A DNA stretch of 61,697 nucleotides, counting the filler, from Platydemus manokwari (taxonomy: Eukaryota), in the NCBI GenBank assembly GCA_037951405.1. It is 5 parts of 5 records of this genome, joined end to end, with 100 filler letters (N's around TTAATTAATTAA, not from the genome) between each part and the next. Parts side by side here need not be neighbours in the genome. Positions count along the whole stretch, not along the records: positions 29,467 to 43,148 come from JBBMOY011644736.1; 4 more parts are not named here. The stretch is one strand, 5' to 3'. Below are positions 1 to 43,148 of this stretch, piece by piece (position 1 is the first letter of the stretch; every line of letters begins with the position of its first letter). The notes below the pieces were generated by a model. That model did no database searches and was not told where the DNA came from. It saw only the letters and a program-made list of their open reading frames with translations. A program made the translations under genes and the position numbers.

Positions 1-3000
1 AAACCTTTTTTTTTTAATTATAAATACTACTATGGGTAACTTAGTAATGTATTTTATGTTTCATCAAATTCCAATATTTGTATTTCAATTAAATTCTACT
101 TGATTATAATTTTTTGATGTTTAAAATAATTATTAATAAGTAGTTATGAATTATTATTTATGCTTCATCTTATATATCATCTTATATCCATCTGTATTTA
201 GTTGATTTGTCAGATAAGTATCATAAGATTAAGATTTTTAAAGATGATATTCAGATAGAATTACCATATCAAATTAATATTAGTAATCATTATCGATTTA
301 GTAGTTCTAGATTTAATTCATTTATTTTTTAAACGTGTATAGATTCGAAGCATGGTATTTATTCACCTTAACAATTCTTAATTAAGCTTTCAGAAATTAT
401 TTTCTTATAAAAATTATTGTATTATCAAATATTTTTATATTATTTGGGAGAATGAATTTAATTTCGAAATAAAATAATTCCCATAAGTTTGCTATTTTTG
501 AGAAATTTTCGCCAATCTGATTTGAAATCCAAAATTATACTGATAAATAAAACCTTCCTTACTTCAATGGTCAATTGCTGAAAATTACCGTTAATAAAAT
601 AATCATGTTACTGCAAATAGTTATTTGATATCGTAATTATAATGATAAACAGCGATTTGTCAATGAGTTCACTTAAAAATGTGACAAGCAACTGTTGTAA
701 AAATTGAATCTGGTAAATGGTTTAAAAAAAGAAATATAATATCATAATTTGTTCCAATGCTATCATTTTCATTTATAAAAGGGATGCTTCAGAATTAATT
801 AAAATAAATGTTTCGAAACTTTGATTTGAATATCAAGGTTAAATATCTGAATTGCAAAAGGTCTCAGTCAAATGGTGTTAGAAATCTAATTATCTTATCG
901 AAAACTTTATATCATTTATAACTAAATTACGTTGATATTCAAAATAAGATTTTGAGGTACTATCATAAATACATACACAGAATGGTTGTTAAATTTTAGA
1001 AGAACAATCGCACCTTGTGGAAACTACTTTAAATGTAATGTAAAGAAAATGATACATATTCATTTTTAAGAATTTCTATATATGGACTTCTTACACTAAA
1101 GCTCCTCAACGTAATTTTTTTAATTTAAAATTCAGGTCTTGTTTTCATTTAAGATTTATGGATCAATCGATACGATTTCTCGACTTTGATCATTTTATGC
1201 TTCTAGGTTGATTGTTGAGAATTCATTTTATAGATTTATCGTATTTGCTTGGATAAGTGACCAAATATCCTTGATTAGATCGATGTTAATTATTATTCAT
1301 ATACCATTTGCATTTACCAATGCATTGAGTTTATCAAATTATTTATGTTGAGGCCCACAAATCAAACAGAATCATTGTATATATAAATTTAATTTTATTT
1401 TTAGACCTTGAAACCCATTCCTACCATTTTCCAATTTCTATCAATCACCATCACTACAAGTACGGGTCTCTATCATTCAGTTTATTTATATTTATAATGA
1501 GTACCAGTCAAATAGATCGTCAATCAACCCAACTATTGATTATATCACAAAAACAACCAAAATATTTACGAAAACTCTGAAAATAACCATTAAATAGTTG
1601 ATACACAAAATTTAACAAAATCCGATCAGATTCTTTCCAAATAACAATCCACTTGATGTAAGAGAAATTACTAACAAATTATCCATGGAAAAATTTATCG
1701 AATAAAAATCAAAACTCTGGGACATCAACTGAGCACACACGATAAGCCTATAGAAAGATTTTGATTTCACGAGCAACTAACAGTCTTTTTGGTGGGTAAC
1801 TTTCATTCTGTGTAACTTTATGAGATTTTTTGTGACATCACGTCTTTGTATTGTATTCAACTTTATTTTGATGATCCAATCTTGATTTATATCTATTGTT
1901 CTTGTATTGGGATTTCTAGTCATATTTGGAGACTAGTTGAACTTGTAAGTAACTTTTTATTATATTCTTGTGAATGTAATATTTTATTTTTAGTTTCAAT
2001 CATGTATTTTAGTAGAAGGAGATTGGTAGATTCGGTAAGTATTAAAATTTGATGATAAAATATAATTATAAATAAACTAGTGTACTAAAAAGGATAATTA
2101 TAAGAATAATAAGTAATATAATTGATAAATATAAATAAAAATAATAATTAACGATGATAAAATAAATGAAAATCAAAAAAGCCGATAGATGTTTGTTACA
2201 TATGTTGGTAGGTCATAAATCAATCAAAAGAGTTATAAGAACCAAGAAAGGAACCCTAAAAAGAGTCGATACACACAAACCCGATAAACACACGTGCGTT
2301 TACCAATCAGATACGTTCTAATATTAACCCATATTTAGAGGCTAAGAATCGAAAGGCACATATCTACAATCAATGGCACTAGAGATGTAGCACGAACTGA
2401 TTCAGCAAATGGAAAACGCATATCTGTGACATCAAACAGACACACCCGATATAACTATAAATTAGTTGAGTTCCATAGATATCTGCCAGACTTTGACGGT
2501 GACTGGTACATAAGAAGTCACTCACAAAAACAAAAGGAAGAACAAAATAAAAAGTCGAAATTATTTTGATGGTTCACTGAAAACAGTAGACCGCATCAAC
2601 CTATTTTAGTAGTGTTCTGAATATTGTTGGAAACACTATTTTATTCTTTTGTTGAGCAATTTATTTTCATTTTTCATAAATAAATATACTAGTTTACAGA
2701 TCGTCTTTTGAATATCATAGAGGATATTAAACTGTAAATAGATATCAAATAATCGATCATACTTAGGATTTCTACAAACATCTTATAGAATAATTTGTGA
2801 TAATTAATTCGTCTAAGTTATATTAATAACAAACATTTAATAACCTCGATAAAGATATACACTCATCATTAAAATTTCAGCCATAACCAGTACTGGTAGT
2901 TTCGTTTTCATTGGTGATAATGAAGCCCTCGGGAACCATTAGATAAAAACCACAACAAATAAAGCCTACAAAAATAAATATCAAGATGCATTAAATACTC

Positions 3001-3594
3001 AACACTGAAACAAAGTAATTATTTTAGATATCAAATAACCTTGTACCTTCTGTACTGAGTGTACTTTCAAGAAATCTTAATCGTATGTGGTGTTCCACTA
3101 AATGTTATCATTATTAATAATACTATCAATTATTCAGAAAAGTGATTATTTGAAATATCGCACAATTACTTTATTTAACAAAAGAAAAACACATAGCTTA
3201 GCTCAATATATTTGATCCTGAGAAAATAGAATAATATCACGAACTTAGAAAACTAGTTATCTAATTTTATTACATATTTTATCAATAAAACTGCCTAGAG
3301 ATGATAAAAATTCGAGTCGGTGAATTTCGTTTATTAAAACAAAAGTCAACTTTTTCTTAATTCACAATCGATTTTTTCTGTAATTTTTTTCTGTTAAATC
3401 CACACTTCCACGGGAATTTTATTTCGATAAAATTTTTAGTATTTTCAATTTGATTTGTTCTGATTTTACTAGTGGCTATATGGGACTTGGTTCTGGATTT
3501 TCTTTGTTTATTTTTCATAATTATTGTTATTTCTAAAGATTACAATTTTTCAAATTATTTAATCCTTGACTAAATATTAAATATCATTATACTT

Positions 3595-29466: not shown

Positions 29467-31804
29467 ATTGGAATTTTTTGAGTTCGTTAAATTGGATTCC
29501 TATAGATAGTAGAAACTACAAAATATGAAAATTCCAATGACTCCTTACATGCTACATACAATATAATTAAATCATTATTCCAGATATGTATCATTTTGGA
29601 ATAGTAGCTGTAAGTTGCTACCTTTTTATAAAACACGCTTTGGAGACTAACTGAAAAGTCACGACATCAAATTATATATTTAACTACAATTATTTAAACA
29701 ATATCTTATTTTGATATTAATTTAAAATAGTTATTTTAAACTTTAATCTTTACAGTATCTATAAAGGCTGGTCTCCTGTCTTTTAAAATCTCTAGACTTA
29801 TCTCTATAAGTAATAATAGAACTAGCATTGGAAATGTCTCAGAATGCTGATCTTTCATATCTTTTTCAGAAATGGTTTTGAAATTAACGAATTGGTAGCT
29901 CTGAACAATTCATCACCTCATCTGAGCTTTAATTTATTATGAAGTGATAAACTTGAAAACATTTTTCATAAATTTTCGAATTTCTTCTATATACCCAGTT
30001 ATTATTCGACTAATAAACTAAAGTTTTATTGGTTCGAATTGTATCAGCCAGACACAAATAATTATGAGAAAATGATTTTGACTATTTTCTAGTTTGCCAG
30101 ATTGGTAACTCTTTTTAAAAATCTTTTGTTAAGAAGACTTAGTTGTTTCAATAATGATAGCTTGTCACTTTCTGTAGACCAGTTATTAATTCGATTGAAA
30201 TGTTTTGAAAACAATATCTTTCTAAAATACATTTTGTAAGACTGATTTGCAGCTCCATGTGAATGATAAAAATAATAGTAATAATTAGTAATATAAGTTA
30301 GTTAATGATTTTCTTTTGGACCACATTTATTGCAATGTCGAGCAATGAGTTTATCAGTTCGGCTCTAAGAAATTAGTTAAATCCCAGAGACTGATCATTT
30401 GGATTTTCATACAAAATTAAAATAAATTTGTTTTACATTTGCTTTAATAAAATATCTCAAATATATTGATAAATACAATTCAACATTATGGGAACAATAT
30501 GGATACAATACATTATGGATAACCTCTCTAGTTCTAAGATTTGAATGCCTATCTTTAAATTTCATAGGAATTTGTAAATGAGAGTTACAAATCCTATTTT
30601 ATCTTTCAAGAATGCCAATCGGATATTAGAGTTATTAGATACTTCAGGAAACAATTTCAATTTGAAAAAAAATCGATAATTCGTAATAATTTTTGTGAAC
30701 TAATCCAAAGATAGGAATGTATGGGAAAAAATAATGTATTCCAAAGGTATAATTGGGAAAGAAATATTCGGTTTTGGACCGACCAGACATTTGTTGATCC
30801 AGTTCCTCATCATGTACAACATTCTGTAATGAACACTCTGTTGTGTTGTTATCACTATAATATTCCATAATATGTTTATATTTGGTCATCAAAAATCAAG
30901 TTCTCATAATGATTGGTATATTATGAGATGATCATAATCAATAAATTAAACCAATGCCACTTAATTTCGATAAATAAATAACATTAAATAAATAATAATT
31001 ACTATTTGGAAATGAAAGTATAAACTTGTCGGATGTCTCGAGCTGCAAGATAACTAGAAATATAATATTAGCCTCCGACGTCCATTTTTAGTAGACACAT
31101 TTTGACATATTGGTGATTATGTAACATTTTGCAAAAACGATTTCTTTATCAAAAATTGAATGCGATTTTATAATGATGTAATTTATTCGTCCTGTAACAG
31201 TGATTGTGCCATTAGCTGAATTTCTTTGTCAATATTTCTTAACATAAACTATATTTTATATTATCTAACTTATTAAAAATACTTCCTTATTCATTTATTA
31301 TTGTCAAAACAAACACAAAACTAAATAAATTAAAAAATTGAATATGAATATATTATAATTAAAAGTTGTTACGAACATTTTCAAGATATCTTTTAAATAT
31401 ATTGTGCTATTTTTTTTTAAAATTGGGCTTTGTATTTATGATCTGTGTTTATTTCTATAATATTCAAAAAGGTTTTTTTAAAATTCTAAATGCTTATTTC
31501 GGGTACTTGTAGAAAATTCATGTTATATTACATAAGTTTATCATTATAAAATATCATTAATATGATAATTCACAGTTAGAAAGACATTAGTAAAATGATC
31601 ATCAATACATATAATAAACATAAAATTGTAAATTGTTACTCAGGATAAATTGTGATGATAAATAGCGATTTTATGGACACATATTCGCAGCGACTAAACT
31701 ATATCACTTATAAAGAAATATTAAATGTACAATATATAAATTGTTATAAGATTACAAAGCATTTGATTTATGGAATGTATTTTGAAAACTTATTTCTTTT
31801 TCAG

Positions 31805-32662
31805 CCATTCATAGAAAATTTTGATAAACACTACAGAACATTGTTAGGTCACAAATCAGCGGTCACTCATTTGGCAATGGGAGAATCATTTGCAGTTTTG
31901 GCATCATGTGATACTCAGGCTAATGTTGCTATTTGGGATCCTCAAAGATTGAGTTTAATACATTTCATTGATTGGCAGTCAATCAAATGTACACCATTGA
32001 GGAAAACAGTCAGTTGTCCAGCTTCAATAATGTCCAGTAGTGTTAAAAATATATAATTAATCATATAGTTAGTCATGATTAAGAATATGATGAAACCGTC
32101 AACGGATTCTTGCCCGATCCAACTGATTCTTTATCAGAAATATCAGCCATGTGCTTCAGTGAGACGTTAGGAGACTTAGTCATATCTCGATTAATGAAAC
32201 AAAAAGGTACTAGTTTGATATCGGACATAGAAATATAATATTTTTAGTTGTAAATAAACTTGAGAGCATCTCTAATATCAGTCTATTCACTATTAATGGA
32301 AAGCATGTTCAATCAATCATGTTATCTGGGACCGTGATTTCACTCAGTTATACTAACTTGGTAGAAGGGCGTAATACGAACGCTATTGCAGCAGTTACTA
32401 GAGAAGGGCGCTTGACGGTGATGAGCAGCTGGAATTTACAAATCGTTTGGAAAGTCAAGGTAAGAATGAAAGCCATAGCAATAAAAGGTAACCATTGGAT
32501 TTGTAGATTCCTCAACTTTACCAACCGGATCCAATCGCGTCAATTCAATATACACACACAGGTAGCGAACTATACGTCATACACGAGTCCGGACATCTGC
32601 AAGTGCTTCAATCCAATAAACCAGACATGTCATCGAGACAGCATACTTATTTTTGGTTATGA
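31805..32662 (+). CDS. LYST: 3' terminal exons of a LYST (lysosomal trafficking regulator, BEACH-WD40) homolog; 5' partial
   Basis: Hand-spliced GT-AG exons 31805-32036, 32084-32206, 32248-32459, 32507-32662 (first junction least certain) give LLGHKSAVTHL...VAIWD...SAMCFSETLGDL...SLFTINGKHV...SYTNLVEGRNTNAIAA...MSSWNL...HTYFWL*. This parallels the LYST WD40 tail as I recall it (SETSGDI, LWTVNG, SNQPEGVSINVIAGG, WSTWDL). Upstream exons not located. Confidence 0.8.
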
Positions 32663-33172
32663 ATTATATTTTCGGAATATATTCACCAATTTTTGTAATA
32701 CATTTGTTTATTATTTAAATGTATCAATACAGCAGGAACATAAACAAATAGGGTCGAAAAGTACGTTGAAAATGTAATCATTTTATATTCTTTGTATTAA
32801 TTTTGAAACATAAATTTGACCTTTTAGTCAGTGTTAGTCAATTTTGTGTAAACACTGCTCTAATATACCCAACAATGACTAATCATTTACAAGAGTTCTC
32901 TAAATGCGTCATACCCCGTATCCAATATCAACAGGAAATAAAATATCTAGATTACGTCATATCAAAATACTCAAAATTAACGCTTCATTGATTTGCAATA
33001 CTTATCATTTATCATATAAATGTCAGCGGTCATCTTATTACGTCAGAGATACATTGTTCATGCAATTTATCGTCACTCACGATGGAGGAATTTTTCCTTA
33101 ATCACATATAATTTAAAAATGAAAAAATTTATTAAAAACGTAAACAATTATTAAAAATGTATTTACACATAA

Positions 33173-35626
33173 TTATAAATAGAATAAACGATTTCGAATG
33201 CGCTCATTGATAATTGCAGGATTGGCTCCTTTATGAACCTTACCCACTAGCTCAGCAAGCCTGTGGGCATAATGCACAGGTACAGGAACCCTTATTGTTC
33301 CCATCCAGTTAAAGTATAGATGAGTCAAAGCATAAGTTATACTTTGTAACTCATTGGGCGAAATAGCTTCCATAGTTCCAGTTTTGTTAAGCAGACGAGT
33401 ATCTTCCAAAACATTATAGTTCGTTGGAGTAGCAGTTCCTTTTGTTACTCGTTGGGAAACGACAAAAAATTCAAAAAAATTCGGCTTAACAATTTCTTTA
33501 TCGACAACGGTTCCAGGGGAAGGATTATCCCCACGATTGAACAACTTTGTTGAGATTCTCTTTTTAACGATTACGTAAATTATCTGAGGAACTGGTACGC
33601 CATTCTCTTTATAAATACTCTCTATCATCGGCTTCATGGCATCAACTTCGAATTGCTTTGTGAATTGGAGTTGACTATCACCAACACCATCTCTGAAAAC
33701 AATCAATCTTTGTGGTAAAATCTTGAAACGATTTTTGAAATCCGTTAAAGCCAAATTAAAATTCTTGCTCAACGTTTCGTGGAACTCTTGTTTTCCCTTA
33801 GGAGAGTTAACGAAACTCATATATTGGGTGAAGCTACTGTTCGATGAAAATACGGAAGCATGAATGGATTTTTTACTAGATTTATTATGGTAAGTGTCCA
33901 TACCAATCATCATCGTTGGTCTCATTTTTATATCAACTGTCCAAGGATCGTAACCGAATTTACAGAAAATTTGCATTACTGTTTTATTAGATACAACTTG
34001 ACGCCGTTTATCGTTTCTGTTGCTGCCATTCCTAGTGGTTACACATTGAGTCAACAAACCCGTGCTCATTGTGAACGATTTTACTTTCGCGTAAACACGA
34101 TCATCTGGCACAAAAACCAAAGCTATCTTAGCAGCAGAACCGTCACCACTTCTAGCAACATCATTCAAAGATTTTTCTACATCGTTTGGTCCGCAAGTGA
34201 ATACTTTTCCAAGTCTGGCGTCGATTCGTAGATTCCTGAATTCGTGTTCGATATCATTAAGAAAATTACCATATTGAGAATCATTTCTGTCGACAATGAC
34301 AACATCCACTTCATGCTTCACGCCTTTTGGGGGATTGAATTGTATTCTGCCAAATTTCCAATCATCTTTAATTTTCTCATTAATTCTTTGACCACCACTA
34401 ATAACATTGAAAGATGGTAACTCTCGACCCTCGATTTCCAACGGTCTATTTTCAATTTTTAATTGCCACTTATCCGACATTGATTGTGCAACTTTGTTTT
34501 GCCTAACCCAATCACAAAATGATGGAATATCTTCCAATCGTTCACGAGGTCCCCTCTTCAATACACAACCGAGATTCTTCTGTAAATCCATATTTGACTT
34601 CTCTTGATCGGAAAATCCACAAAGATAACACAATTCCCCGGGGATATTAAGGGTCATATCTTTGTCTTCGGGAGATTGTATTTCTCTGAGTTCCTTTGCA
34701 ATGTCCCTTCGCATGGGTCTTTTAACTCTTGTCAAAACAAAGGGTTGATCTGGTTGTTGTAAAACTATGTTGTATCGTTCCTTAAAGTATTGCGCATATG
34801 ACAGAGTTCGACCAGCCATATCAAATGTTTCATTGATGTTCATTTCCTTTATATCACTTATTCTGTATGTTTTATTGTTATATTTGGTGATTATGTCTCG
34901 CCCTATCAATTGATCAACATTTCGTCGATTGTATGATTTCGAAACAGAGTTATCATTCAAAACCCGATTGATTCTTTCGATGTATAGCAGAGTGGTTAAC
35001 TCTCCGCTGGGCTTTGTTCCTCTTTGTAGAATCGTACCGAAACCCCCAAGCACTTTAAAGTTATTGGTTTCGAAATAAGTGGGCCCGATGTCTCTGGGAA
35101 CGTCGCCTTTGGCAATATTTGGGCTTAAAAAATACCCCTTCCCGATTTTCTCTTGCCCTAACATAACTTGGAGATTATTTAACAATACATTGATCATTTG
35201 ATAGTATTCTTCGGAATCTGGGAAAATTGTTGAAACTAATCGCACTGTAACTAACTTTTCACCAATACTATATTCCATCAGTTCCGATTCTTCGTGCCAC
35301 TTTTCGCTAGTGAAAAGTCGTCGACCATCAAAACAAAATGCTCCTGGCAGACTTTTTTCATGGCAGACCCTTACAAGAAATTGTAGCTTTGATTTCAAAG
35401 TTAAACAAGTTTTGGAAAATACACTGTCATACATAAAATATTTATCAGTTTTCAATACAGAAAACTTAGTAAAACTCGATTGTAATCGCACAACTCTCCC
35501 TAAATTACCGATTTTATCAACTGTTTCTTCTGGTTGTAGCTTTGGTTCCACAATTTTAGAAATCCTTCGGAGACCACCACGTTTGTCACGAAGAGTTTTT
35601 GAAGGTCCACTTGGTTCATTCTCCAT
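33173..35626 (-). CDS. piwi: Piwi-clade Argonaute, 817 aa, CDS without introns (planarian smedwi-1/smedwi-2, DjPiwiA/B-like)
   Basis: Uninterrupted ORF. PAZ motifs TKYNNKTYRISDI and SYAQYFKERYNI; MID motifs YAKVK and TQCV; PIWI motifs GMDTYH, FRDGVGDSQ, VKKRI, PGTVVD, FFVVSQ, PTNYNV, HLYFNWMGTIRVPVPVHYAHRLA; C-terminal LFYL typical of the Piwi clade. Exact ortholog not determinable without a tree. Confidence 0.97.
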   Translation of the reverse strand: MENEPSGPSKTLRDKRGGLRRISKIVEPKLQPEETVDKIGNLGRVVRLQSSFTKFSVLKTDKYFMYDSVFSKTCLTLKSKLQFLVRVCHEKSLPGAFCFDGRRLFTSEKWHEESELMEYSIGEKLVTVRLVSTIFPDSEEYYQMINVLLNNLQVMLGQEKIGKGYFLSPNIAKGDVPRDIGPTYFETNNFKVLGGFGTILQRGTKPSGELTTLLYIERINRVLNDNSVSKSYNRRNVDQLIGRDIITKYNNKTYRISDIKEMNINETFDMAGRTLSYAQYFKERYNIVLQQPDQPFVLTRVKRPMRRDIAKELREIQSPEDKDMTLNIPGELCYLCGFSDQEKSNMDLQKNLGCVLKRGPRERLEDIPSFCDWVRQNKVAQSMSDKWQLKIENRPLEIEGRELPSFNVISGGQRINEKIKDDWKFGRIQFNPPKGVKHEVDVVIVDRNDSQYGNFLNDIEHEFRNLRIDARLGKVFTCGPNDVEKSLNDVARSGDGSAAKIALVFVPDDRVYAKVKSFTMSTGLLTQCVTTRNGSNRNDKRRQVVSNKTVMQIFCKFGYDPWTVDIKMRPTMMIGMDTYHNKSSKKSIHASVFSSNSSFTQYMSFVNSPKGKQEFHETLSKNFNLALTDFKNRFKILPQRLIVFRDGVGDSQLQFTKQFEVDAMKPMIESIYKENGVPVPQIIYVIVKKRISTKLFNRGDNPSPGTVVDKEIVKPNFFEFFVVSQRVTKGTATPTNYNVLEDTRLLNKTGTMEAISPNELQSITYALTHLYFNWMGTIRVPVPVHYAHRLAELVGKVHKGANPAIINERIRNRLFYL

Positions 35627-35631
35627 TTTAA

Positions 35632-35678
35632 CTGAAATAATAATTAATTAAAGAAATTAAGGTATTGAATAACATTAC
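35632..35678 (-). other. Predicted 47-bp 5'UTR intron of piwi copy 1
   Basis: Minus strand GTAATG...TATTTCAG followed by TTAAA-ATG; same 47-bp size as introns in LYST and Meis here. Confidence 0.6.
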
Positions 35679-38600
35679 ATTATTTTTATAAATATTAATT
35701 TAAACAACGCATGCTTATTTTACCAAAATATTAATTTATTTGTCTTTGTTCTGAACGAAACATTTAAATTCAACAAATAATGTTATGTTTAACTCTCCGA
35801 AAAAGAACTTATAAAATTTAAATTTTATTTTAAAACATTTCAATTTCTAAAAAGAAAATTTCTGCAAAAATTGTTTAATTTTTCAAACTTGAACTTTATT
35901 TCGATATTGGTTTCTTAGGCTGTAAAATGGTTAATATAATAATTAAAAACGAAAAGACATTAATGTTTTGCTTCACGAATTATGTATATTGTCCTCTAAA
36001 ACTTTGTACCAACAGAATTACTACTAGACTTTTCATTTAAGGTCTAATGTTAAATTTAGATAATAAGCATAATTCTATAGAAACATAAATTAGCTCACAG
36101 TTTGGACATTAAACATTTTAAATAATCAGGTATGTATTAATAAAGTTACTTTAATAAGTTAAGTAATCTCTATAGCTTAATTTTAACTGAGTGATTCATA
36201 TTTTTTGTTTCTGTGGAAAAAGATTGTATTCAAATCATTGTTAATAATCCAAAAGGTGAGTTTGATAAAAAAAAAGTTTGTAAAACTAAGAAGCTTTAAT
36301 TTTTTCTAGGAATAATTCTAGACTCTCAAATTCTTTAATTCAAATCTTCTCACACAAATTCATGTCGAAGTTTAAGTTATAGAAATTGAAATAGGGCCTC
36401 CTCGAGAACATTGGACTCGGTGCTAACAATAAATTACTATACATTTTAAATTCACGATAAACATAGAGATTAACCTTTTGTAATTTATTCGAAAAAAATA
36501 CATTTATCAGTGCTCAGTTTACTCGATTGTTTTATTTTATTTAATAAGTAATATACTGTTATTTTACAGACTTATTGATTGTCTGAACAAGTATTTATAC
36601 TTTCGTTAATCAATCAATTTGCTCAACTTAATTTTATTGATTAGATTTAACTTAATTATTTCTATTTTCTTTTGATACTGGTAGTTTTATTTATCATTAT
36701 TCATTTACAAATTGTTACGTTTTATATGATTCAGAAGATATTTAAAAGATATTTTTAACAATCTAAATGATCTCAAAATTTAAATGTATCATGGCAAAAA
36801 TGTGACGAACAGCTGGTTATGTACGCTTAAAATATAAATTTACAATTTGTGAAAATGTTCTAATAAAATAAAGCAATTAATATTTTATTAATGATCTGAC
36901 ATTGAATATGGAATTTTATATATAAATAATAATATATAGATAAAGAATAAGATCAATAAAATATAATTATCTATTACAATCGATACAATATAAATGATAA
37001 TTAAAATTGAATAATATGAATGTTTTTTATTAGATGTTCCATGCTGTTGCTCTTCCACGCACCATATGAGCAGATGATGATGGAGACTTTCTCATCTTCT
37101 CCTCACTACCTGAATATAGCACTATTGGTTTCCAAATAATAGGATAATACAGATAATGAATATGAAGCAAATAGATAATTCAGAATTATTATGTTCTATA
37201 GGCTTGTGATAGAAATAATTTTAAGGGGCGACTTCTATGTCAATGATTGTCAAAGTTGAAAAAAGAAATCGATTTTATGATCCAATAAGGGAAAAGAAAA
37301 TAATAAAATTAATTATTCATAATTAGCATAAAGAAAAACAGTATAAAAACCATAAGGAAATTAGAAAAATAGCTCACAAATAATTTAGAATGAGTTAGTT
37401 TGGAAAAGGCTTGCTGCATTATTCGACTAATAATTTCGGAGAAGGCTTGTAGTTTATAACAGTTTCATTAACGAAAAGTTATTATTGAAAAGTACATTTA
37501 AGTTCCATATCAGAAGCTTTCCTCGCTATCCCATTTTTATTTAACATGCGTATTTGTTAAATATTGACTTTATTTAATTGGTAAGTTTAGTTTGCTCTGT
37601 TGGGATATTTATTCATTGATTGTCATATAGTTTGTAAAAGGAATCATATTAGGTAACTGTGTACCATATTAGACAACAATGTATATTGTTATTAACCTGA
37701 ATAAAAAATATTTATGTTATTTTGGGGGCTTGCTTGTTTTATTTCTATTAAACTTATCAGTCTCTGAATTAATTTTATTGTTGTTGATCACTGTTGTCTT
37801 AAACAGTCCTTCGTGGTTCTGATCAAGCCCTAGGTACGAACTATTGAACCTATTTCTTTCTTTCTTCGCCTCGCGTTTAATATTGTATGATGACAATATC
37901 AAACGGCAACAATGATCGATGGTTATTATGTGAAAACTATAATGATTTTTTTAAATTTATCAGTCTCAAACCAAATTTACAAAGCAAATCAATAACAACG
38001 TTTGGGTTTTATAAAATATTTATTGACATCGAAATTACACTAACACTGACCATAAATTACTACAGTATTCAAGTGGTTAAATAAAAATACACAATGATAC
38101 GAAAATTCCTATCAAGCTTCAGGATAAGTTACACGGTTAATAAACTGCACGCTCTTGCAGAAAAACCACCTTTCAAGGATGTGAGACAAAGCTCTATAAT
38201 CGAAAATATACACGAGTTTTATAATACTGATTAGTTGGTTAAATAACGATTGAACTTTCGTTAACGGGTATATAATTGAATGAAGGCTTGATACAAATTC
38301 TTCTGACAAATATGGGTCGGATCGAACACGAGCACAATGTTCTGTTATAGACGATGCACTTCAAAATACGGCTTCACATAGGTAGTTCAGTTCGAAAATT
38401 GTGAGATTTTAGCCCCTATTTATACGATTCGGAAAACGAATTTAATCGTCACGGATTGTTGGAAAAATTGGATGCATTTAAATTTATTCCCCGAGGATTT
38501 TATAAGATAAAAATTCGCTGATTGTTTTTGGAAATATAAATAATATAATATATTTACATTAATATTCAAGTTCCTTGAAGGTATTTAAATGATTATTATT

Positions 38601-41600
38601 ATTTTTAACCGTGTAAAAAATTATTATTCTTGTTGTTGATATTATTATTATTATTATTTTTATTATTATTATTATTTCAGTAAATTATCCAAAAGCTTGA
38701 TTTGACATAAAAGTTAATGAATTAAAAATAAAATGAAATACAATGCTTGATTAATCAAGCTTTACACTGAAATCGTTACAAAAATTACTGCTTGATTAAT
38801 CAAGCCAAATTGATACAATTTTTCCTTTACAGTTCATAAAAATTGTTACAATATACACCAATTCATAAATAATAAATTATTACACTTTACAACAAATTTC
38901 AAATAACCAATTGTTACAGTATACATCAAATATTAAATGTCATTTGTTCAGTTAAGCGAGACTGTTTTAGTTTCAGTTGGATTGCAGAAATTGTTACAGC
39001 TTCTAAAATTGATTGTTGTTTTGTCACATCCCCAACATTTATTCAGATTTTGTCTTTTATTTTAATTATTTATAATTCACACATATGTCGGATTGAAATT
39101 GCTCTTCAACTGGCAGTATAGAACTCACATTAGTAGTAAATATAAAAGACATAATCACAACAAGAGCAGCAAAAGTTAGCAAATTACACAGCAAACTCCT
39201 CAAGTTAATAGCTGTTCAATATCCACAAGCGGGATATTAGAAAACCAAATTGAGGCCATTACAATTGCAAATTACTAATGATAAAATTTTAATTTGGATA
39301 GTGCTGTGAAATTTTAAATAAATAAAAATTTACTCTAAAAAATCTGCAAATCTCATTCGTCAATAATTATTCTTCAAAAGTAATAATCTTTACGTCTTAG
39401 AATTTGACAACAACTTTTAAAAAATCGAAAATTTCGTGTCTTCTTAAGTTTAGTGATTAAAGATCCTGCATTCTTGCAGATTTAAGATTTTTAGTAGGTC
39501 AATATTATGAACTACACTCTCTTTATTTGACTACTGGTGTTGTACTGTTTGCTTTGACTTTGTTAATATTAAGTTTCTTCATTAAGTACATTTCAATTTT
39601 TTAACCTTCTTTCTGTCTACTTGCTAATAGCATTTTAGTTATTTGAAGCTCTGAGTTTATTTGAGTTTGAGTTTGGAATATTGAACTGAATTGAGGTTTT
39701 TAATTGAAGATAATCATAATCAATTTTCTGGAGTTGTTTAATTGGGATTGAATTTGAATGGCTCACAGATTGGAAATGAGCTTTATTTGATTGCGGATTA
39801 TTGATTAAGTAATAGGATTGAGTTATTTAGGATGAATTGGATTGAAGTGATTGTGCAATGTTGAGTATTGTGTAATAAATTTTGAATGGGAATTTTTCGA
39901 AACAAATGAAATTTCTTCACAGAAGAAGAGGAGTTTTGCATTCCTGAAGAACAAAAAACAAGAAACTGTAAATCCCAGAATATAGATGTAGGTTACAAAC
40001 ATTAGAGAAGCAAATAAATGGAATTCAAATTTTATCACAACCAATACTGTAGAAACTAGAAATCAGTGAATTTAATATAGAAATAGACGAAACTAGTTTC
40101 CCACACTATTATTACATCGGACTAATGTGCAATTTCACAGATGCAGCAAATCACTAAGAAGTTTTTGTTCTTATTTGAAACTGTAAAATCCTCGATTTGA
40201 CCACAGTATTTATATTACTTTCGTGATGTTTTTCCAAGAGAAGAACAACATTATGATTATTATTAGTAAATTCAACAGTATATTTATTAAGTAATTTTCA
40301 AAGGTAAATTTTATTATTTTTATTATTAGTTCCAGCTGCCAGCTCCGACAATTACATTCTTCTAATTATATACTTTTTACATATAAGATACAAAACTTTC
40401 AAAATCGCGAAATCTCAATAAATCTCAACTCAAGCTAAAAGAAGGAGAATCACAATTTCAGTTTAAATGTCCTGTTCAGGATCTCAATGACACTTGAATG
40501 ATGTCCGAGCCTTAGTATGAGTTTGCTCAGACTCTAGAATGAAGTTTGACTGTTATTTAAATTATTATTCATTTAATTAATTCTGGCACTGTTTTAGGTT
40601 TAATTTGGATTTTAGAGGAATTTGAGTTGAATTCCAATTCTTACATCGAAATAATATCGCATTACTTTCGATCGTATTGTTTGTAGATATTGTGAAAATG
40701 AGTTTCATCGACTTATTTCGGGAAATTTCTATTATTATATTGGTTTTAACCAACTTTAATCTCCATGTTAAAGAGATTTTGTTTGCTTGTTAGAAAGTGG
40801 ACTTTGACTTACAAAAATTAAAAATAATAAAATAATCACTTATGAAAATTCCTGATAATAGATGAATTCAATTTTGAAAAGCCTTCAGTATGTGTTGAAG
40901 TTCGATAAATTGTCATCTTAGATGTGAATTATAAATAAGCACGTGTGTATTAAATTTTATATTTATTAGTCTGAATTGTTGAAAAGGTATATATTTCTCT
41001 AATCAATCCTCATTATTTTTTGCAAATAACCTCGCAATGAACTTGTGGTTTTTCTTTGACTTGGATAATAATTCAGGTCATCAAAGTCTGATCATACAGC
41101 AGTTTTAAAATTATTAATTTATAATTCTAAAAGAATAATTGGACAATTGCTACTAACATTGTAATCACCGAATGCAACATAACAACCTTAAACTTACGAC
41201 TCATTGGAAGGATAATTTAAATCTTCTAATTCTTCTATGATAGACATGGTATTATCACAAACGCTTTCCGCATGAATAATTACACTAGTGATCATAAATA
41301 GCAATAAAGTTCAAGAATTAATACAAATTAATAATAATAATACTGATAATGATAGTAGTAATAATAATAATAATGATGATAAAGGTTAAATATAAAATTC
41401 AAGTCACACTTACCTGCTGGGTTAATTTACAACAATGTGAGCCATTGATTGAACTAAAACCCAAATAATCTTTTTATCTTCACAAAATGCTTGAAGATTA
41501 CTTGGAACCAGTGAGTTTTCTATATTCTTTCTTTTATTTAAAATTATTTTATCACATTTATCTACATGAAAACCTAAATGAATTGAAACTTTAAATTAAA

Positions 41601-42434
41601 ATTATTCATAATAAAACTGACCAATTAAAATAAAGATTAAAAAATTTAAATTTAAATTATTCAAAATGTTTTCAAAAATAAATATTAAAAATCTTTTGTT
41701 AGATAATTTTAAAAAGTTATAAAATTGTATCCATTCAATTTATTCTAGTATTTGAAACGACAACTTATAACTGGTTAAAACTGGAAGTAAATCAGATTGG
41801 TTAAATTATAATGAAGATTTATAAAATTTGAAAAACTTTTATTAAATATTTTCGAATACCTTTAAAACAATTGTCAAGTACCCTTTATGGAACGCCTTCC
41901 ATAGATTGAGAATTAAATTAAACGAAATAAATTAATTTAATAATAAATATTTTTTTAAAAAATGTTTATAATTGTGATTGTTTGCTTGTGTCAATTAATT
42001 TAAGTAAATAATAATTCAAACTTTCTGTATTCCATTAAATAATCAACCAATAGACTTACATCAAAATTATCGAATTATTATTTTTCATATATATATATAT
42101 ATATATATAAATCTAATAAAATTCAAAGTACTTTCTATTTTTGATTTCAGGAAAATAGTTGGAATCCAGCGTTTTAAGAAAAACAAATCAATTAGGTTTA
42201 CTTAATAGGAATTCAAACAAAATCACTGAAACATGACATTGAAATATCAATTTCAAATAAAGTAATAAACATCACCAATTTTTAAATAATTTTTTCATTT
42301 ATTTTTAAAATCAAATTAAAACACGTGATATATTTTTGATTAAAAAACGATACCGAAAAATCAATATTTTAAAAATAAAAAGATCTTTGTTTAAATTAGT
42401 TAAATAACAAAATTGTCTGTTGTATCGCCAAATA

Positions 42435-43148
42435 ATGAATACTGAGCTAATAAATACGGCTTCCAAAAATGGAAAGCGGGGTGGACTTCGTAGAATGTTT
42501 AGAATTGTTGAGCCAAATTTGCAACCAAATGATATCGTAGAAAAAGTGGGTAATTTAGGTCGAGTAGTCCGCTTGCAATCGAATTTTACCAAATTTAATG
42601 TTTTAAAAACTTCGAAATACATGATGTATGATACAATGTTTTCTAAAGCCGGTCTTAGTCCAAAGGCGAAACTACAATTTCTTGTACGTATATGCCAAGA
42701 GAAAAATCTACCCGGAGCTTTCTGTTTTGATGGTCGAAGACTTTTTACTAGTGAAAAATGGAACGGCGAAACTGACATTGAAGAAATCAGTCATGGTGAT
42801 TTAAAGATAACGTTTAGACTAGTTTCGACAATTCTTCCAGATACAGAAGAATATTATCAGATGATCAATGTATTATTAAATAATCTACAAGTTATATTAG
42901 GGCAAGAAAAGATCGGAAAAGGTTATTTCCTCAGTCCTAATATAACAAAAAACGAAGTATCGAGAAATGTTGGACCGACTTATTTTGAAACTAATAGCTT
43001 CAAAGTTTTAGGAGGTTTTGGAACAACACTTCAGAGAGGAACTAAACCCAGTGGAGAATTAACCACATTGCTATACATTGAACGAATCAATCGAGTTTTA
43101 AACGATAATTCTGTAGCAAGGACATACAATCGTCGAAATATTGATCAA
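42435..43148 (+). CDS. piwi: Second Piwi paralog, 5' part only (N domain to start of PAZ), truncated by assembly gap
   Basis: First ATG at 42435; open frame up to the Ns. Colinear with the 817-aa Piwi (KRGGLRR, GNLGRVVRLQS, LPGAFCFDGRRLFTSEKW, LQRGTKPSGELTTLLYIERINRVLNDNSV). Confidence 0.93.

Follow-up and report, generated by a model that had tools for sequence, protein, structure and literature searches.

A head-to-head pair of PIWI2/B-type genes in Platydemus manokwari, apparently the product of an old inverted duplication

We identify two PIWI genes lying head to head in a genome assembly of Platydemus manokwari (GCA_037951405.1). We propose that they are paralogous triclad PIWI2/B genes of the PIWI-clade Argonautes, arising from an old inverted duplication, divergently oriented and both kept by purifying selection, a reading to which we assign a probability of roughly 85%. 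The window is a stretch of 61,697 nucleotides, filler included, made of five parts from five records of this genome; the piece examined here covers window positions 29467-43148 (record JBBMOY011644736.1). A listing of open reading frames (ORFs) returned two long frames in this piece, on opposite strands, and G+C content is 33-38% in genes versus 20-29% in the AT-rich remainder. The start codons, at 35626 on the minus strand and 42435 on the plus strand, are 6808 bp apart and direct transcription away from each other, where an initial annotation made from the sequence alone had placed them. The features that carry the argument are as follows.

33173..35626, minus strand: copy 1, a complete predicted PIWI coding sequence of 817 codons plus stop, uninterrupted from ATG to TAA (ORF list, translation)
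42435..43148, plus strand: copy 2, the putative 5' part of a second PIWI2/B-clade gene, 238 codons, open to the edge of the piece, with N from 43149
34910..35584, no strand: arm of the inverted duplication in copy 1, codons ~15-239, with its partner at 42474-43148 in copy 2 (79% and 72% complementarity; repeat search, tblastn)
35627..42434, no strand: spacer between the start codons, 6808 bp, 25% G+C, with short ATT/TAA microsatellites and a 34-nt tandem repeat

Copy 1 has the domain content of a full-length PIWI protein. Pfam detects PAZ at residues 228-350 (3e-18) and Piwi at residues 509-797 (7e-64), end-to-end alignment with Siwi and other solved PIWIs places its regions in the order N-PAZ-MID-PIWI, and residues 14-796 align to silkworm Siwi with E = 9e-85. 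In a HMMER alignment to 5GUH, copy 1 residues D577, E614, D646 and H788 stand opposite Siwi D670, E708, D740 and H874. These Siwi residues are reported to be its slicer tetrad (DEDH; Matsumoto et al. 2016), and by this alignment copy 1 keeps a predicted tetrad that is intact. Two further motifs, TATPTN (within KGTATPTNYNV) and YAHRLA (within HYAHRLAEL), are of the type diagnostic for the flatworm FLiwi class, whose second motif reads TVTPTN or TATPTN and whose third reads YAHRLA (PMC8191739). An RGG motif near the N-terminus is shared with SMEDWI-2 and DjPiwiB. The visible portion of copy 2 corresponds to the N-terminal domain up to the start of PAZ, 238 of ~820 codons or 29% of the expected length; these 238 residues gave no Pfam match, as expected since the piece ends before PAZ.

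The best database matches of copy 1 are all planarian PIWIs. Identity is 78% to SMEDWI-2 over 98% of the length and 77% to the Dugesia japonica 'Piwi-like protein' Q2PC95 (DjPiwi-1), compared with 56% to SMEDWI-1, 55% to DjPiwiA, 53% to Dendrocoelum PIWI-1 and near 29% to non-flatworm PIWIs; SMEDWI-3 was not among its close matches. The 238 residues of copy 2 are likewise 78% identical to SMEDWI-2. Planarian PIWIs have been divided into PIWI1/A, PIWI2/B and PIWI3/C groups, in which Schmidtea, Dugesia and Girardia orthologs are at least 80% identical (PMC5750089). In our trees, built for copy 1 at full length and for both copies over the N-terminal region, with no PIWI3/C sequence included, a PIWI2/B clade comprising SMEDWI-2, DjPiwiB, DjPiwi-1 and the window copies splits from PIWI1/A with support of 100/100. 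By sequence, the two genes are thus members of the PIWI2/B clade of triclads (that of SMEDWI-2 and DjPiwiB) within the FLiwi class, and the initial annotation's description of them as planarian-type piwi genes is borne out.

Within that clade, approximately unbiased (AU) tests on the N-terminal alignment gave p = 0.25 for a clade of copy 1 with copy 2 and p = 0.41 for a clade of copy 2 with SMEDWI-2 and DjPiwiB. A clade of copy 1 with DjPiwi-1 was marginally rejected on the N-terminal alignment (p = 0.03) and not rejected at full length (p = 0.34). Searches for additional relatives added little: a metagenome scan with the PIWI2/B alignment returned only distant PIWIs of 26-31% identity, a word search with the C-terminal domain found no further close triclad sequences, and an exact-protein look-up in other assemblies had no entry for SMEDWI-2 or for copy 1.

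The two copies are similar as proteins and strongly diverged as DNA. Their products are identical at 174 of 225 residues (77%) in an ungapped BLASTP alignment (E = 5e-128), and identity to copy 1 is 74-77% for the 238 residues of copy 2. Over the 225 aligned codons DNA identity is 74%, distributed as 81%, 91% and 49% across codon positions 1, 2 and 3, and different codons are used at 82 of the 174 identical residues. The block LQRGTKPS, for which the initial annotation had quoted two different codon strings, is encoded in frame by both genes, at 35029-35006 in copy 1 and from 43029 in copy 2. At four-fold degenerate sites (n = 67), 46% are identical versus 31% expected from composition, equivalent to ~1.05 substitutions per site. 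The coding sequence is the only long inverted repeat in the piece; homology stops ~14 codons after each ATG, and neither the N-termini nor the flanks align. Given DNA identity of 74% and about one substitution per four-fold site, the paralogs are best described, from their sequences, as an old inverted duplicate. The same two measures, with synonymous sites nearly saturated, rule out an allele or an assembly echo. On each of these points (shared peptide blocks with divergent third positions, differing N-termini and flanks, and an old inverted duplication) the analysis agrees with what had been claimed for the locus.

Purifying selection has clearly kept both frames open through most of the time since they diverged, as seen for copy 2 over the visible 29% only. 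The Nei-Gojobori method, applied to the 225 codons, gave pN of 0.132 and pS of 0.715, which correct to dN of 0.146 and dS of ~2.3 and yield a ratio of nonsynonymous to synonymous rates (omega, dN/dS) of 0.06. As dS is near saturation, a second value of ~0.14 was obtained from four-fold sites, and the uncorrected pN/pS of 0.19 is a conservative ceiling, so that omega ranges from 0.06 to 0.19 and is not near 1. Neutral simulations with the base composition of the spacer (2000 runs) lose the open frames, and we therefore conclude that selection held them: at 0.1 substitutions per site none of the 2000 runs left the 817-codon frame open and 1.5% of them left the 238-codon frame open, and from 0.25 substitutions per site upward essentially none preserved either. 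No stop-free run in the 6.8-kb spacer exceeds 82 codons. The claim of purifying selection is thus upheld, and the accompanying claim that both copies are functional fits copy 1 in full and copy 2 over its visible portion only, where there is no stop or frameshift. Evolution has not been even. Polarised with SMEDWI-2, copy 1 carries 29 unique changes and copy 2 carries 12; polarised with DjPiwi-1 the counts are 22 and 13, and N-terminal branch lengths are 0.34 and 0.075. Copy 1 is the more derived and copy 2, in its visible part, the slower-evolving gene.

We propose that an old inverted duplication at the DNA level, acting on a gene whose coding sequence already had no introns, would have produced the two copies, and that these would be transcribed divergently from separate promoters 6.8 kb apart. 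By analogy with SMEDWI-2 and DjPiwiB, each protein would load PIWI-interacting RNAs (piRNAs) in neoblasts and the cells descended from them, and would silence transposons there and possibly some mRNAs, an expectation drawn from planarian PIWI biology as set out in PMC5750089, PMC8532177 and PMC6824462. PIWI-clade Argonautes characteristically bind 2'-O-methylated piRNAs of 26-32 nt and silence their targets. That two copies have persisted for so long would imply that they share out the work to some degree, and may reflect sub-functionalisation by expression domain or by target set, as for DjPiwi-1 with its restricted expression.

Several considerations weigh against this reading. The support for both genes is DNA sequence, and their adjacency across the spacer is that of one assembled contig; piRNA binding, silencing and sub-functionalisation are carried over from relatives. 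Copy 2 is seen for only 238 of ~820 codons, and a later break in its frame or a very recent loss of function could be present. With AU p values of 0.25-0.41 for the groupings of copy 1, copy 2 and SMEDWI-2/DjPiwiB, the duplication may be specific to this lineage or may predate its split from Schmidtea and Dugesia, and either copy, or neither, may be the true ortholog of SMEDWI-2.

The initial annotation had also raised a control region possibly shared by the two genes, for which our results give no support. The 732 nt upstream of each ATG resemble each other no better than shuffled sequence does (local score of 36 versus 33.8 +/- 4.0). The 6808 bp between the start codons also exceed what is usual for bidirectional-promoter pairs, in which transcription starts lie less than ~1 kb apart within one promoter region. 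Sequence evidence for a shared control element is absent and a shared promoter motif is unsupported. A long 5' untranslated region (UTR) or a 5' intron could shorten the gap between the true transcription starts. ORFs in the spacer had no Pfam match, an Rfam scan of the piece found no RNA family, and tblastn of copy 1 found no further piwi fragments in the piece (41667-41702 masked). An AT-rich 25-nt tandem repeat occupies 41627-41697 of the spacer.

Copy 1 is co-linear over its whole length with SMEDWI-2 and DjPiwi-1, whose sequences derive from complementary DNA, and its coding sequence is therefore without an intron. Copy 2 has none over its first 238 codons, so the description of both genes as intron-free holds for the whole of copy 1 and for that portion of copy 2. 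Two short elements at the ends of copy 1, both read from the sequence, bear on how its transcript may be processed.

35632..35637, minus strand: TTTCAG, following an AT/pyrimidine-rich run, 5 nt before the copy 1 ATG
33128..33133, minus strand: AATAAA, a likely polyadenylation signal, ~40 nt past the copy 1 stop

The TTTCAG resembles a 3' splice acceptor and might mark either the site of spliced-leader addition or the 3' boundary of an intron in the 5' UTR. Reading upstream from the same ATG, an in-frame TAA is reached after 24 nt. The closest equivalent of the TTTCAG at copy 2 is a TTAG located ~25 nt upstream of the start codon.

A comparator for gene structure is provided by a JGI metagenome contig (L001; Ga0307474_10034345, 3728 nt) with a PIWI1/A-type triclad gene, 80% identical to SMEDWI-1. 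This gene is co-linear over 728-3173 save for one canonical 45-nt GT...AG intron at 2850-2894, between VSQ and KTTKG; copy 1 has no intron at that site. A literature search on intronless planarian piwi genes gave nothing relevant. On the basis of this single comparator, intron poverty appears to be a general property of triclad FLiwi genes. The L001 gene also carries a frame-breaking deletion near 1030, with ~9 codons gone (LFTTSKWHS in SMEDWI-1). Its split into a 102-aa ORF and a ~600-aa ORF is also called in Logan run SRR8558719, and such split ORFs recur on an 8.9-kb ENA contig between two Tc5/pogo-type transposase ORFs. The L001 gene may be a pseudogene, or a variant with a shortened N-terminus.

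Lack of introns invites the explanation that one or both copies stem from a reverse-transcribed piwi mRNA that became functional and was then locally duplicated. The 2.45-kb coding sequence of copy 1 is free of introns. Neoblasts, which alone divide and give rise to the germline, are rich in piwi mRNAs, which makes heritable retrocopies plausible. FLiwi proteins, for their part, form a long-branched, fast-evolving, flatworm-specific group (PMC8191739). We nevertheless consider such an origin unlikely. Adjacent inverted copies require duplication at the DNA level however the first of them arose, a parent gene with introns is not known, and the TTTCAG before the copy 1 ATG suggests 5'-UTR splicing or trans-splicing. 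Neither a poly(A) remnant nor a target-site duplication was seen in the sequence downstream of copy 1, although erosion of such marks is expected at ~1 substitution per site. A processed retrogene would further be expected to lie unlinked to its parent. The single 45-nt intron of the L001 gene makes scarcity of introns look old and family-wide, which weakens the case for a retrogene specific to this locus but is compatible with an ancient retroposition at the root of the FLiwi class. Under that speculative and rather improbable scheme, missing introns would characterise the flatworm FLiwi class as a whole, and an ancestral piwi1-type mRNA would have been retroposed in an early rhabditophoran neoblast or germline cell, replaced its parent and diversified through repeated local duplications, the present pair being an old survivor with two sub-functionalised members. 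If true, it would explain together the long branch of the class, its missing canonical piwi1 ortholog, its near-absent introns and its tendency to cluster.

Loss of function in one copy, most likely copy 2, through recent or ongoing pseudogenisation is a reading we hold to be quite unlikely. It draws on the fact that copy 2 is visible over only 29%, on the frame-breaking deletion in the environmental PIWI1/A-type triclad gene, and on the extra FLiwi models of Schmidtea mediterranea, for which it was left open whether they are functional genes or transcribed pseudogenes (PMC8191739). Against it, the frame of copy 2 is uninterrupted in its visible part and has evolved more slowly than that of copy 1 (12 versus 29 unique changes; branches of 0.075 versus 0.34), only 1.5% of neutral runs at 0.1 substitutions per site preserve an open frame of 238 codons, and copy 1 is complete with all catalytic residues. 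More doubtful still, and in our view very improbable, is that the arrangement reflects two haplotypes or collapsed repeats misjoined by the assembler in inverted orientation. Planarian genomes are hard to assemble and the piece runs into N just inside copy 2, but with DNA identity of 74% and near-saturated synonymous sites the copies are too divergent to be alleles or to echo a single locus. The paralogs are hence real at any distance from each other, and only their adjacency, not their paralogy, could be artefactual. One public DNA run moreover contains 86% of sampled words of the 10-kb stretch, although this run is possibly from the same sample as the assembly and hence not independent. We retain old, selectively maintained paralogs as the preferred reading.

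Outside the piwi pair, the piece contains part of a neighbouring gene.

31652..32056, plus strand: exon-like ORF with a WD40 repeat (weak Pfam WD40/beta-propeller matches, best E = 9.5e-5)

Exon-like ORFs of this gene extend over 31652-32777 on the plus strand, and its transcription runs towards the 3' end of copy 1. In comparisons with other planarian genomes it might be used as an anchor for synteny.

Planarian regeneration depends on SMEDWI-2-type PIWI proteins, and the design of RNA interference, antibodies and in situ probes usually assumes a single such gene per species. With an adjacent paralog that is 77% identical and maintained by selection, knock-down phenotypes, piRNA immunoprecipitations and neoblast markers in this species could mix two proteins or miss one of them. 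The pair would also be useful for dating the expansion of the family and for asking whether paralogs divide work by cell type. Otherwise little is changed: genes of this type, the function they probably have and their expansion in planarians were already established, and the locus is an ordinary addition to the family, of modest interest.

SMEDWI-2 (Schmidtea mediterranea, Q2Q5Y8) and DjPiwiB (Dugesia japonica, D2Z0D9) are the nuclear PIWI2/B proteins of planarian neoblasts. Copy 1 has their domain layout and length class, and shares with them the DEDH tetrad, TATPTN and YAHRLA. The two reference proteins cluster together at 90% identity (their N-terminal parts are 93% identical), whereas the window copies and DjPiwi-1 lie outside this tight pair. 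Like DjPiwi-1, copy 1 is without the 7-residue Lys/Glu-rich insert of SMEDWI-2 (the KKDEEGV region; copy 1 residues ~303-320). The SMEDWI-2 antibody was raised against the peptide KKPMRRERKKKDEEGVE, which contains this insert (PMC8532177). Judged by sequence, that antibody would probably not recognise the copy 1 paralog. The structurally solved Siwi, Piwi-A and Drosophila Piwi (5GUH, 7KX7, 6KR6) are far more distant, at only ~29% identity to copy 1, with the catalytic tetrad and the N-PAZ-MID-PIWI order conserved.

DjPiwi-1 (Dugesia japonica, Q2PC95) is itself a diverged extra SMEDWI-2-like paralog, of 818 aa against 817 aa for copy 1, and is said, in work of Rossi et al. from 2006, to be the D. 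japonica paralog that marks a neoblast subpopulation. In that species it exists beside DjPiwiB (PMC5750089). In Girardia dorotocephala, the GdPiwi2 transcriptome contigs are 10.1 kb long, ~4x the coding need (PMC5750089, Table 1); read-through or overlapping transcripts of clustered piwi-2-type genes could account for this length.

In S. mediterranea, eight FLiwi gene models collapse to five, four of them being >99% identical (PMC8191739). The models include SmeT030029, 030033, 030034 and 032534, together with 002173, 069984 and 070309, and the near-consecutive identifiers 030029, 030033 and 030034 suggest local duplication. Neither window N-terminus is present in the S. mediterranea small-RNA-pathway protein set of the same paper, and a literature search for piwi clusters in the Schmidtea comparative-genome paper and for the S. 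mediterranea gene identifiers gave nothing relevant. The suggestion that a cluster of this sort may not have been described is accordingly weak as to kind, since a SMEDWI-2-like expansion is already published in the eight FLiwi models and in DjPiwi-1 beside DjPiwiB; triclads are already known to carry extra, probably locally generated SMEDWI-2-like paralogs. The contribution of this locus is a pair that is old, clearly under purifying selection and divergent in a defined arrangement. The seven SMEDWI-2-like models of S. mediterranea are young, all within a tree distance of 0.00-0.07 from smedwi-2 and from one another (PMC8191739), whereas the window pair is old, at 77% protein identity, and so offers a well-separated example in a family otherwise known for very recent copies.

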